From Azolla caroliniana (taxonomy: Eukaryota; Plantae; Polypodiophyta), in the NCBI GenBank assembly GCA_043228905.1, contig JBHGNT010000011.1, positions 18,290,001 through 18,354,000 of the forward strand: a stretch of 64,000 nt of DNA. Reading direction: 5' to 3'. The notes below the pieces were generated by a model, which saw only the letters and a list, made by a program, of their open reading frames with translations, did not search any database and was not told the origin of the DNA. Both the position numbers and the translations under genes were made by a program. Shown here piece after piece: positions 706-6,633 of this stretch; the stretch's first letter is position 1; each line of letters starts with the position of its first letter.

Positions 706-3700
706 ATGGTAAGGAGGTCTGGGTCCAAGAAAGAAAAACCTCTCCATCGTAGTTATTTTGTTCATTTGAAACGTCATATCCATCTCCATCTCACACATCG
801 TGGTCTGTACCATCCATACATCCATAATAACAATAAGATTATAAGAATGAAACAAGCACCAGAATTCGCAGAAGCGAGCTCCTCAGCAGATCAACAAGGT
901 TTTATGAGAGAGATTTCCATGCTACAAAAATCTCGTTCGTTGAAGGATCCATCTACTTATACTAATAGTCCTTCACGAATTAGGTCTGCATCTCTGAAGC
1001 TAAAAAAGTTTGGAAAAACATCAAAATTAGTTCCGCATTCTTCTTCTCCATATGAAATTAGGGAAGCAGATAGAACTGTGAATAGTAAGCCTGAATTAGA
1101 TGAACTGAATTCTAGCGAAAGAGAAGGATCATGGCTTGAAATCAACCCTGCGGATGGGAAGAAGATTAATGTGGAAGAAGTTGCTTCGAATGTTTTGTAC
1201 AGAGAAGAATTAGTAGGAAATAATTCTCGTTTATTCAATGCAATCAAGAGATTAGAGATTGGAAGGCAAGATTTAGGTTATACAGATCTTCTGTCACAAA
1301 GAGGCGTCGGCATGTATGGAATGTCTACAGCGAAGAAGAGCGATGAAGTACTCAGCTTGGAAAGTGAGAGAGAAAGACAAGCTTTTGCAGGTTCTGAATC
1401 ACTTTGCACCGATAAATGAAAATCAATGTCTTGGGGTTGTGAATTTAGTGGCCAGAAACCAAAATAAATGGTTTTATATGGTTGTGATTTCTCTAGATAT
1501 AAATCAAAATCGATGGTTTTTGGCTGTGGATACAGTGGCTATAAACTAGAATCAATTGTTTTTGTTTGTTTGTTAATTCTCTAGATATAAATCAAAAGAG
1601 ACTGTTTTTTTATGGCTGTGGCTACAGTTACTATAAGCCAAAATCAAGAGGTTTTTTAGCTCTGGATTTAGTGCTTGTGTTTATAAACTAATATCAATCG
1701 TTTTTTGGTTTTGTATTTAATAATACATAAATAACCAAAAACAACGGCATTTGCAGGTTGGGAATTCTCTACTGGTAAATCAAAATCGATGGCTTTTGCA
1801 GGTTCTGAATTATCCGCTGGTAAAGCAAAATCAACGGCTTTTGCAGGTTGTGCGTTATCTGCTGGTACATCAAAATCTGTGGACTGTTTGCGTGTGAATC
1901 AAAATCAAGGGTTTTGTCTCACCTATCAATCAAAATCAGTGGTTTAATTTGCAGGTTTTGAATCTAATATTGGTAAATCCAGATCGAGGATCAAAGGTAG
2001 CACTAGAAGGGCAAGGTTAAGGAAGAACAGAAGGCCTCGATCTCCTCCTACTAATTCTCGGGCTCGTATAATAAGGTCTACCCATGAAGAACGGAATTGG
2101 ACATCGTTAACTAAGGCAAATAGCGGATTAGCACAGAAAACACGTGATGAGCTCGAAATATCTGAGCTTTCTCACAATGGATGTGGTTTACCTTGGATCA
2201 ATTGGTCGAGAATTCATATGAAAGGAAAGAATATTCCTCGAAATAATAATATAGTTAGTGGAAATGTCTCTTGTGCTACCTCAGAGCTTCTTCATATGAG
2301 AAGAAGAGGTAAATCACTTCGTATGAGCTCTTCAGAGGATAATTCTATGCCTTGCACTACATCAGAGTTTTCGGATAGCTCCTTTAACACAGACTCGGAT
2401 AGCTTTCCATTGCTTGAACGGTGCAATATCCCCTCTGAACTTGCCAGTGTTGCAAATGAAGAAGAAGTGGTCACGTCCCCATCAGGACATAGCTTGGTTC
2501 TCAGAGGTAAGTATACCTCTCAGAGTGTAATAAGTGAAAAATATATGCCAAAAACATTTCAACAGATTGTTGGCCAAGGTTTAATCACACAAGCTCTCTC
2601 CAACTCTCTCTCAAGAGGGCGGATTGCAAAGTTGTACATCTTTTATGGTCCTCGGGGCGTAGGGAAAACCTCATGTGCCCGAGTTTTCTCTATGGCTTTG
2701 AATTGTGTTTCCATGGATAAAACTAGACCATGTGGTTCTTGCACCCAATGTTTACTAGCTCAAAAACATGGAAAAACTTGTCCTTTCATGGAGCTATCCG
2801 TGAGTGGAATGGGAGGCTCAAAAGGAATCAAGCAGTTATTTCATGAGATTTCAAAACCTGTACCATTGAAATATAGAGTTGTTATTGCAAATGAATGCCA
2901 TATGTTATCTACCCAGTCGTGGGATGTTCTTATGAAAGTTGTGGAGAATACCCCGAGAAATGTTGTCTTTATCCTTTCTACGAGTAGCTTGGAGAGGTTG
3001 CCTCATTCAATTATCTCATCAGGGTATCAGAAATTCATCTTCTCGAAAATCAAAGAAAGTGAGATCCTCAACAGGTTAAAGATGATTGCAGAATGTGAGG
3101 GTTTTGAGGTTGAACTTGATGCCTTGAAGTTAATCGCTACATCATGTGATGGATCTCTTAGAGATGCAGAGACTATACTTGATCAGCTCAGTCTCCTCGG
3201 TCACAGAATTCCCTTGGCTATGGTTCAAGAACTGGTAAGTTTTCTTGTTAAAATCTATAAATGTAGCATCGGTTTTTATGAAACTTCACTATTTATGTGA
3301 TTATTGAGACCGGTTTAGACAGGGCAAGTTTTACTGTACTAAATTACAGAAATAAACTTTATCAAAGAAATAGGTGAACTGTTGGGATCAAGGAGCCTAT
3401 TCTCCTTGATGCGAGTGGAGTGGAGTGGAGTGGTGTGTGTGTTTGTGTGTGTGTGCATGCGTGCACGTAAAATACTAGGGATAGATTCATTGTATATTTG
3501 GAAGTACAACTAGAAAAATGCACACATTAGCTTACTGATAGGAAAAACTTATGTTCTGTGACACCCCATAAGACAGCCAATAGCATAAAATACTAGGGAT
3601 AGATTCATTGTGTATTTGAAAGTACAACTAGAAAAATGCCCACATTAGCTTACAGATTGGATGAAGACTTATGTTCTGTGACACTCCATAAGACAGCGAA

Positions 3701-6633
3701 TAGTAAATTCGCACATTTGCACCCCATAAGGCCCACATTTGCACCAATAGGGAATCTCAATTTAAAACATACTCACGTATTGGTTGCAACATGGACTATA
3801 TTCTCTGTAAATTCTCAAAAGAAAGTAAATTGTATAGGCTTCTATAGCCAATCAGATTGTGAATAAACCACTTTGCTCGTGTGTCTGTGGTATTTATGGT
3901 TTCCATACACAAATAGAACTTGCAACAATTCCTCAAAAATACAATATCTTGTGTATGTTTAAATAGCCCAATTGGATTATGGATACTTCTAAATACCAAA
4001 GAACTCTGATCTTGAACAATCCAACCAAACATAAAATGTATTTGTAATTTTGTTGCTTATTTTACTGTGGCAGATGGGATTAGTTCCAGATGGACGACTG
4101 TTAGATTTGCTGGATTTTGCTCTATCTGCTGATACTGTAAACACTGTTAGGAACTTGAAGGAATTGATGACATCCGGAGTTGATCCACTCAGTCTTATGT
4201 CTCAGCTAGCATGTCTAATCACAAGCATTCTTGCCGGTGGGTATAAGATTCCTCAAGGAAGATGTCGCAGAAGGTTTTTCCGAAAGAATGAATGTAAGTG
4301 GCAGATTGTTTTCCTTAAATGCATCTTTTGCCTGTTTCAGATCAAAAGTATATATAAAAGACGTGTGAACGCAATGCTCATAATCTATGGAGAATGTGTA
4401 CTGTTTATTTGTTGAAACTGTTTTCTTCAGCATCTTGCCATCAGGAAGTTCCGAAAACAAAATCTCAATTTCTGCAAAGCCTCCTTCAATGCAAGAACTG
4501 TGGAAATGAAAGTTCACCTATTTAAGATATGTATATGGAGGGGAACCTGGTGAAGCTTATTATAATGCAGCTATATACCATAGATTATGTATAACCTATG
4601 CATCAATGTATGATGTTTTTACAGCAGTTCATCTGCTTAAAATGCCATATAAGACCACTTACCACCTTGGTTTTCTGATATTATATGTGATCTATGAATG
4701 CAATGCATTATATTTCTAGAGTATTACAACTACTAGTATGATATTATACAGGGACGGAGAATTCACTAGCCTTGTGTATTTCTTGTAGTAGGAAAGGAAG
4801 GCATGGAACAGTTACGGCAAGCATTGAAGACACTTTCTGAAGCTGAGAAACAACTTAGAGGCACTTCAGACCAAACCACATGGTTAACTGCTGCATTGCT
4901 TCAATTTGCTCCAGATCATTCTTACCTCCTTCCAAGTCCATCTTGGAATACAAGTTTCACCCCAAGCTCAGGAGGTTTAAATACTACAAATTTTACTCCA
5001 GGTATGAATTTATTTACTCAAAAAAATGTGGATATTTCTCAATCTGAACCATGGCCTGGATCTGGAAGAGTTTATAATTCAATTTCGGATTCAGGTGATA
5101 ATCATCCCGTAGAAAATCATCATCAAGTCCCACAGATGAAAAATATGCAATCAAGGGGCAGAGAGTTTAATCATATGACCATGTGGAAAACTAATATAAA
5201 TAATGTTCTCGAACTAGAGGATCTATGGCAAAGGATCCTAGATGCAGTGCATTCTAGTAATTTGAGGAAGTTCTTGCAATCATATGGAAAGCTATCATCA
5301 CTCTCGCTTCAGAAAGGTATATATTACTTCCCAATTCTTTTTGCATCTTTTCAGCTCTTGGAGTTTCAATCATGATTCATTATTTTAATTTCAGGTTTGG
5401 CTTTAGCAGTGTTAGAGTTCCATGAATTGGACAATATTTCTAGAGCCCAACGATCAAAAGCTAGTATAGCACATGCTTTTGAAGTGACCCTTGGATGCCC
5501 AGTAGATGTGAAGATGCAATTTGTTTCCAACATAGAAGGGGAAATGAAAAGAAAGAGCTTCTCTAGAGACCTATCAGCTACACTTTGTAGTAACTCCACA
5601 TTGAATAATCTTAGCAGCTGTCCAGCAGTTAATGGAGACATGGATGGGAAACATAATAATGATGATGATGATTTTGGAAGATCATCACAGTTAGGAACGC
5701 ATAGTAGAAAGCACCGATCACATGAGCTGTACCGTGATCGCGAAGGTCCTTCTATGTCACGGAACTTGTCAGGGACAATAGAAATAGTGGAATTAGGCAA
5801 GAGTAATGGTATGGCAAAGCACAATTCTGATGAGAAACTAGAGAATGCGTGGGTTGAAGGAGCATCACGAAGCAATGTATTAATCGGAAGCTCTTCTGAA
5901 AGAGGTCAAGGAAAGGCTCATCATAACTCAAGGATGACGAATAGCACAGGTAGAAACCACCCAGGAAGCCTTGGTTTTGCAATTCAAGAGGTTGAGGATG
6001 GTATGGAAGATGTGAGTGACGTGCAAGGCCAACCTTGTAGGCACCAAAGGCCCACAAACTTGGTATGTGGTGGTGCCATTGCTGATCATGGAATAGCTAC
6101 CCAACTGGAAGAAGAAAACCTGTAAGTTTGAGATGGGCATTTGCTGGTTGTTTTGGACAAAATACCCTTAGGTTTTCAAGTTTTACAGACGTAGAGAAAA
6201 TTCCCTTGACATTAACTAGAATACAGCTACACTCTCGTTTTTGTAGTATAGGTGTATTCTGGTATTATAGACGGGTATCTTGTATTTTAGAGGAACGTTG
6301 TGATAAATGTCAGAAAACTAGGGTATTCTGGTCTTTTTCCAGTCGTTACTAAGTTATCGATCTTGTTAAGCTTGGAAATTGTGCATGATAATCAAGATTT
6401 TCTTTACATTGCAGTCGCTTAGAATCAAGGTCCGGTAGACTTCAATGTTGGCATGGAAAAAATGATGAGGTAAAATTTTAAACCTTTGTAAACGGGTCTC
6501 CATCCTTTCAGCAACTTTTGTAGGCTAATATTTTCATTTTGCTTGATTTAAGGTGAAGCAAGTAGAAAACAATCCGCGAAGATCCGGACTTATTTGGAGA
6601 TTTTGTTCATGCGGAATATCCAAGTATTCTTAA
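706..6633 (+). CDS. STICHEL-like protein (DNA polymerase III gamma/tau / clamp-loader AAA+ domain), ~1191 aa
   Basis: N-terminal HLKRHIHL...LQKSRSLKDPS and GCGLPW..WS motifs, Walker A GPRGVGKT, Zn module LNC..PCGSCTQC, DGSLRDAETILDQLSLLG, TTWLTAALLQ and C-terminal LRLESRS..LQCW. Phase-consistent GT-AG exons: 706-1390, 1955-3234, 4074-4293, 4789-5316, 5395-6121, 6415-6469, 6553-6633 (3576 nt). Splice sites are manual calls. Confidence 0.9.
1378..1980 (+). repeat. Degenerate ~45-bp tandem array (~14 units) forming STICHEL-like intron 1
   Basis: Recurring AAATCAA..GG(C/T)TTTT.. unit. TTTGCAG|GTT copies end at 1390, 1756, 1801, 1846 and 1954; the middle three are exactly 45 bp apart. Confidence 0.85.
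3468..3703. repeat. Intronic tandem duplication, ~119-bp unit x2
   Basis: taaaatactagggatagattcattgt...cataagacagc occurs at 3468 and 3587. Confidence 0.9.

Follow-up and report, generated by a model that had tools for sequence, protein, structure and literature searches.

Tandem copies of a 45-bp coding segment as the probable source of two introns and a small exon in a STICHEL-like gene of Azolla caroliniana

The window analyzed here, a stretch of 64,000 nt from the Azolla caroliniana assembly GCA_043228905.1 (contig JBHGNT010000011.1, positions 18,290,001 to 18,354,000 of the forward strand), contains a STICHEL-like gene, the features of which are listed in Table 1. Coding exon 1 carries both STICHEL-like N-terminal motifs, SRSLRDPS and CGIPWNWSRIH, and its N-terminal motif MLQKSRSLKDPS matches the Ceratopteris protein P0003. 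The last 45 nt of exon 1 represent the first unit (U0) of a tandem array. Left unspliced, the open frame from the ATG at 847 runs into a stop at 1419, as had been stated in the original prediction made from the letters. The large exon opens with the last array unit (U14, FESNIGKSRSRIKG); next come a basic stretch, the CGLPWINWSRIH motif, and a DnaX-like AAA+ module with its lid. In domain searches, in which the exons were queried singly, the large exon matched PF13177 (DNA_pol3_delta2, 6.6e-21), PF22608 (clamp-loader lid), and PF00004 (AAA). The match of the downstream exons to PF12169 (DNA_pol3_gamma3) was weak (E 1.4e-4, 22.1 bits, below the cut-off of 24.4). The order of domains, comprising a DnaX-type AAA+ module, a lid, domain III, and a DnaA_N-like domain, is that of STICHEL and STICHEL-like proteins. 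The named relatives in the protein search were STICHEL-like proteins, the closest of them from Ceratopteris richardii and Adiantum nelumboides, with about 50% identity over the large exon.

Table 1. Positions of the gene features and of the tandem array in the window.
Feature	Position	Strand	Remarks
Coding exon 1, STICHEL-like gene	847..1390	+	ATG 847; ends in phase 1 at GCAG|GT; transcript contigs 800-1383/1390, four runs
Tandem array, 15 head-to-tail units U0-U14	1346..1999	+	About 45 bp = 15 codons each
Intron 1a, 366 nt	1391..1756	+	GT..AG, phase 1; units U1-U8
Repeat-built exon, 90 nt	1757..1846	+	U9 + U10; in frame, encodes (G)WEFSTGKSKSMAFAGSELSAGKAKSTAFA
Intron 1b, 108 nt or 90 nt (1865-1954)	1847..1954	+	Units U11-U13; acceptor TTTGCAG| at 1954|1955
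Large exon (exon 2)	1955..3234	+	Contigs 1948/1954-3234; Pfam matches
Next intron (intron 2), 839 nt	3235..4073	+	At the QEL| position; loose transcript ends at 3234 resume at 4074
Downstream exons, clamp-loader domain III and STICHEL DnaA_N-like domain	4074..6122	+	Overall span; Pfam PF12169, PF23007

Several motifs of the AAA+ module were inspected by eye. The Walker A motif is kept as GPRGVGKTS (region 2860-3040 of the window, within the exon 1955-3234). The Walker B motif reads VIANECH versus IVDECD/IVDECH in Ceratopteris, with NECH also present in the Adiantum proteins and in the fern contig L003, and the SRC arginine-finger motif reads SSGYQKF versus SRCQKF or SRCPKY in homologues. Judging from these residues, the AAA+ domain may be a pseudo-ATPase.

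The array was cut into its units by anchoring on the position after CAG|. The predicted repeats of about 45 bp are real: Tandem Repeats Finder recovered two-unit arrays of period 87/88 at 1412-1655 and an array of period 45 at 1736-1877, a repeat search detected families of 5-11 copies with a spacing of 42-50 nt across 1381-1987, and the segmentation resolved 15 units. Units U12 and U13 are truncated (31-32 nt), and an 88-bp higher-order repeat is formed by U3-U4 and U5-U6. Translated in its own register, a unit gives the 15-residue motif G-x-E-F/L-S-x-G-K-x-K-S-x-A-F-A; stops or frame shifts occur in U1-U8 and U12-U13. Pairwise identity among the units ranges from 52 to 83% (17-48% difference). 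The stretches 1391-1756 and 1847-1954 align unit by unit to the coding units U0, U9, U10, and U14, each intronic unit over its full length, and no non-repeat core was found within either intron. The unit core occurs seven times in the 64-kb window, always within 1414-1942, against 0.44 occurrences expected by chance, which points to a local sequence and not to a dispersed element. Since no 45-bp unit was found in the window outside the STICHEL-like locus, a dispersed repeat or transposon was rejected as the source.

Logan transcript contigs of four runs (X1, X2, X14, and X15, bearing four species labels) were aligned on positions 800-3300. The own-species run X1 has no differing letters across the array region and one in the whole stretch. 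In all four runs, ends at 3234 continue with ATGGGATTAGTTCC, located at 4074 behind a TGGCAG acceptor; as the contigs skip the conserved intron 3235-4073, they are spliced RNA. The joint 1390|1757 (seen as 1383>1750, cut +7) was found in X14, X2, and X15, the runs of three relatives, with one to three records per run, and an 8-letter loose end of X1 before 1750, GACAAGCT, matches the end of exon 1 and fits the same joint. The joint 1846|1955 (seen as 1839>1948, cut +7) was present in X1 and X14, and the joint 1864|1955 (seen as 1863>1954, cut +1) in X14 and X15, in the latter on a short contig (1828-1863). Contig pieces 1750-1839 plus 1948 onward were obtained in X1 and X14, and 1750-1863 plus 1954 onward in X14; X2 combines the 1864-type joint with a 6-nt deletion. 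All array joints are GT..AG and in phase 1, and every product is in frame. Since 1390 joins 1757 and 1846 or 1864 joins 1955, the 564 nt between exon 1 and the large exon resolve into an intron of 366 nt, an exon of 90 or 108 nt, and an intron of 108 or 90 nt. The proposed single intron is thus replaced by two introns flanking a repeat-built exon. The description of the 564 bp as decayed copies throughout applies to both introns, which are all repeat copies, but not to the intact 90/108-nt exon that lies between them.

The longer form of the small exon, to 1864, adds CALSAG through the alternative donor. The spliced protein has three 15-residue units versus one in the outgroup, a gain of 30 residues, rising to 36 with the longer form. 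The mRNA thereby retains two (or 2.4) extra units, and the original coding sequence is changed with the frame kept. The added residues sit in a low-complexity and probably disordered region ahead of the basic stretch.

All but one of the five splice sites fall at one and the same position, the TTTGCAG|GTT of the unit boundary, in different units. The motif serves as a donor at 1390|1391 and 1846|1847 and as an acceptor at 1756|1757 and 1954|1955. The donor at 1390|1391 reads GCTTTTGCAG|GTTCTG and the acceptor at 1954|1955 reads TTTGCAG|GTTTTG, both in phase 1; the choice of these two sites was correct in that both are used and lie in homologous copies, but they are never paired in the contigs. 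In its 108-nt form, intron 1b has the donor CAG|GTTGTG at 1846|1847. The fifth site, CTG|GTACAT at 1864|1865, is a further G|GT, a glycine codon located 18 nt inside U11. A 19-nt stretch, GCTTTTGCAGGTTCTGAAT, is identical at 1381-1399, where it holds the used donor 1390, and at 1792-1810, yet the boundary 1801|1802 in the second copy stays unspliced inside the small exon. In the genomic contig of a relative (L001, described below), this inner copy reads TTTCGTAG, not TTTTGCAG. The CAG|GT has been lost at every internal boundary of intron 1a, which is 69% A+T and 38% T, the exons being 59-61% A+T; an A+T-rich composition is expected of a plant intron. The copies used differ among the relatives, one species having lost a donor to a 6-bp deletion and others splicing at an alternative 5' site. 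Conditional on raw reads, it is possible, at somewhat less than an even chance, that splice fate in plants is set by U-richness and exon-intron context and not by the local site sequence; the array would then be a natural allelic series, in which a change in copy number creates or removes introns and exons in one step.

The genomic sequence of a relative was available as a 2.8-kb contig (L001) of an ENA metagenome assembly, covering 1277-4102 of the window at 94% identity. It contains the same 15 units, one for one. A metagenome scan for more genomic copies from relatives returned only L005, which equals L001. Divergence between the window and L001 amounted to 8.0% in intron 1a, 7.2-8.2% in the conserved intron 2, 5.75% in the small exon (5/87 sites), and 3.05% in exon 2; intron 1a evolves at the neutral intron rate. 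L001 has no CAGGTT at 1844-1849 and hence no 1846 donor, leaving the 1864-type only, in agreement with the X2 transcript. The two introns of L001 measure 369 and 92 nt, and their length is thus not kept divisible by three. In intron 2, the window carries a (GAGTG)5 tract and then a (GT)11 microsatellite at 3413-3455, and the segments at about 3468-3587 and 3586-3703 are repeated relative to L001.

These data bear on the age of the introns. Unit-to-unit divergence is several times the between-species divergence, so the array must long predate the split among the relatives sampled. The intron had been called young, a word that can be kept only in a relative sense: the units differ by 17-48%, a relative at 8% neutral divergence shares all 15 of them, and the junctions are common to all sampled relatives, which argues against a very recent gain.

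The state before the array was sought in homologues, the nearest outgroups compared being distant (about 50% protein identity), with no sister-genus locus among them. In Adiantum nelumboides (L004), the closest outgroup with genomic sequence, residues 1-511 of P0005 are encoded by a single exon at 3001-4533 (tblastn), up to the conserved QEL| intron that corresponds to 3235-4073 of the window. This exon carries one unit, QLAFEPTTKSK (…RPQLAFEPTTKSKLGNRSLRKKNRD…), and no intron at the array site. A search with the fern fragment P0151 added just one Adiantum model, fern genomic sampling being thin. The second Adiantum model, P0258, reads as L004 does, with one unit and no intron. In seed plants, P0155, P0180, P0184, P0158, and P0199 are each encoded by one genomic ORF that runs from the ATG to QELV and then reads through into the intron; these ORFs end in unrelated letters right after QELV. 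P0155 was confirmed as genomic on the 27.7-kb contig L007, where more coding ORFs lie downstream. P0004 and P0009 are transcript contigs and were left out of the intron comparison. Homology of Ceratopteris P0003 begins at residue 7 of the post-array exon (KSRSRIKG versus KLKSAFRG), which indicates that U14 is ancestral sequence and not an insert. The tail of exon 1 gave no BLAST match to the outgroups, and its homology was judged by eye. The uninterrupted single-unit exon anticipated for an orthologue was thus found in Adiantum nelumboides, the seed plants likewise having one exon; L003 is ambiguous. Upstream of the annotated start of L004 (1-3000), a long open frame was noticed, and P0258 starts in that frame; no SRSLRDPS motif was found within 3 kb upstream in L004. 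From its sequence, the 5' end of the Adiantum gene is probably mis-annotated or rearranged, and its 5' model is uncertain.

The fern contig L003 (Logan, SRR7121612; 2.1 kb) has a single unit, HAFTCESAGKPK, directly preceded by 243 nt of stop-rich DNA with 65% A+T, which begins with G|GTGAGA. A CTAAC branch-like motif is present there, followed about 25-27 nt on by GCAG|GTAAA. By its appearance, this segment could be an intron lying at most a few codons from the array site, perhaps an independent one; alternatively, L003 may be a truncated copy. It provides the main ground for a different history, in which ferns had an older intron at or near this codon, the array grew by repeated duplication of an exon-intron boundary, and Adiantum lost the intron later. 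The A+T-rich non-coding DNA with its branch-like motif and CAG|GT would suit such a history, and boundary duplications are documented for the potato RdRp and Arabidopsis TOUCH3 genes (PMC4974935). However, both introns of the window hold nothing but copies of the coding unit, and no intron is present at the site in the two Adiantum copies or in any of the seed-plant homologues sampled. In L003 itself, the sole usable AG is at the G of GK, 15-18 nt off the window position, hence a different site, and just 4 nt of any upstream exon are present, as might be seen in a truncated copy. We consider an older intron improbable.

Slightly less probable still is a single 564-nt intron at 1391-1954, spanning the array from first to last copy; the intact inner units would then be, at most, a facultative cassette. 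Its two ends are genuine splice sites in the same phase, and a product joined from 1390 to 1955 would be in frame and have one unit. Yet no 1390-to-1955 joint was found among the aligned contigs of the four runs, and the inner exon (1757-1846/1864) is included in contigs of all four. The evidence is at the level of assembled contigs, which drop rare variants, so minor isoforms, including one skipping the small exon, could be hidden; as the main form, the single intron was rejected. A decaying gene or an assembly artefact, that is, a collapsed or expanded minisatellite in a pseudogene disabled by stops, is hardly credible despite the in-frame stops from 1419 on and the unusual Walker B and SRC motifs, because the independent assembly of the relative matches the array unit for unit, spliced in-frame transcripts occur under four species labels (one contig of 5071 nt continues past 3234 into exon 3), and exon 2 has diverged less than half as fast as the introns.

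The preferred explanation, to which we assign a probability of about 0.78, is that the large first exon of the STICHEL-like gene was interrupted from within, its own 45-bp coding piece with TTTGCAG|GTT having been tandemly multiplied to 15 units, in which the same motif now acts as a donor or an acceptor. An origin of the introns by tandem duplication of an AGGT-bearing exon segment, in a multi-copy and 'imprecise' form, is well supported, and the origin put forward in the original prediction is upheld by the introns being copies of a coding unit with CAG|GT and by splice sites at homologous positions. The process would have started with multiplication of the 15-codon piece bearing the proto-splice motif. 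The earliest copies were probably translated, since a single 45-nt duplicate is too short for a plant intron, and splicing would have become possible only when two CAG|GT sites had come to be separated by several units. The units removed by splicing may then have drifted to U-richness, losing their internal CAG|GT. As to the order of events, all units could have been coding and then intronised, or they could have been spliced from early on; correspondingly, the small exon may be a remnant of an all-coding array or may have been kept from the start. In the gene as it now stands, eight decayed units are removed as the 366-nt intron and two intact units are kept as the 90-nt exon; the three units after these, of which two are truncated, are spliced out as the 108-nt intron, or as 90 nt via 1864|1865.

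Intron gain by tandem duplication of an AGGT-bearing exon was reportedly proposed by Rogers in 1989. The mechanism has been demonstrated experimentally for ATP2A1 (2011, PMC3265369), and 188 tandem-duplication events are listed in Table 1 of a review (PMC3443670), so the earlier remark that natural examples are few was overstated. For most gained introns, the source sequence is not identifiable (PMC4974935). As in the ATP2A1 case, the fern intron is a copy of adjacent coding sequence, the duplicated AG|GT supplies both the donor and the acceptor, and the frame is kept. Orthologues without the duplication would have no intron at the site, as was seen in Adiantum L004 and P0258 and in the seed plants, with L003 ambiguous. 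Unlike ATP2A1, the fern locus comprises 15 short units in place of one duplication and contains two introns with a new exon. Its coding sequence is longer by 30-36 residues, which corresponds to the 'imprecise' gain variant described in PMC3443670.

The nearest analogue, as cited in PMC4974935, is a pair of fission-yeast genes with multiple 24-bp AGGT units and an intron across several copies. In that account, as in the fern, a short coding unit is multiplied and the intron spans several units between homologous AGGT sites; the fern locus differs from the pair as cited there in its 45-bp units, its far longer and decayed array, the use of one motif four times, and its two introns, internal exon, and alternative donor inside a unit. 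The potato RdRp gene (Ma, Lan and Niu 2016, PMC4974935) is likewise a plant case of splice signals provided by a local tandem duplication, but an existing intron-exon boundary was duplicated there, whereas the fern introns derive entirely from coding units with no earlier intron detectable. Internal gene duplications creating introns (Gao and Lynch 2009, as cited in PMC4974935 and PMC3443670) belong, according to these citations, to the same class of local duplication. Intronization in the sense of Irimia et al. 2008, as listed in PMC3443670, shares with the fern locus the splicing out of coding-like sequence, the kept and removed units of the fern being homologous. Set against that listing, the sequence removed in the fern is a duplicated surplus and not unique ancestral coding sequence, and the splice sites came ready-made with the unit and not by point mutation.

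The accepted view of intron gain is unchanged by this locus. What is notable in the fern gene is the long array, the four-fold use of one motif, and the small exon, whose alternative donors differ between species. Every base of the two introns can still be traced to its source, transcripts back the splice sites, and the single-unit state without an intron persists in an outgroup. With several equivalent AG|GT sites available in a multi-copy array, the result is an intron-exon-intron arrangement with species-specific alternative sites, which is not stressed by the simple model. The locus could be used for teaching and, in the form of minigenes, for asking how plants distinguish donor, acceptor, and silent copies of one sequence.
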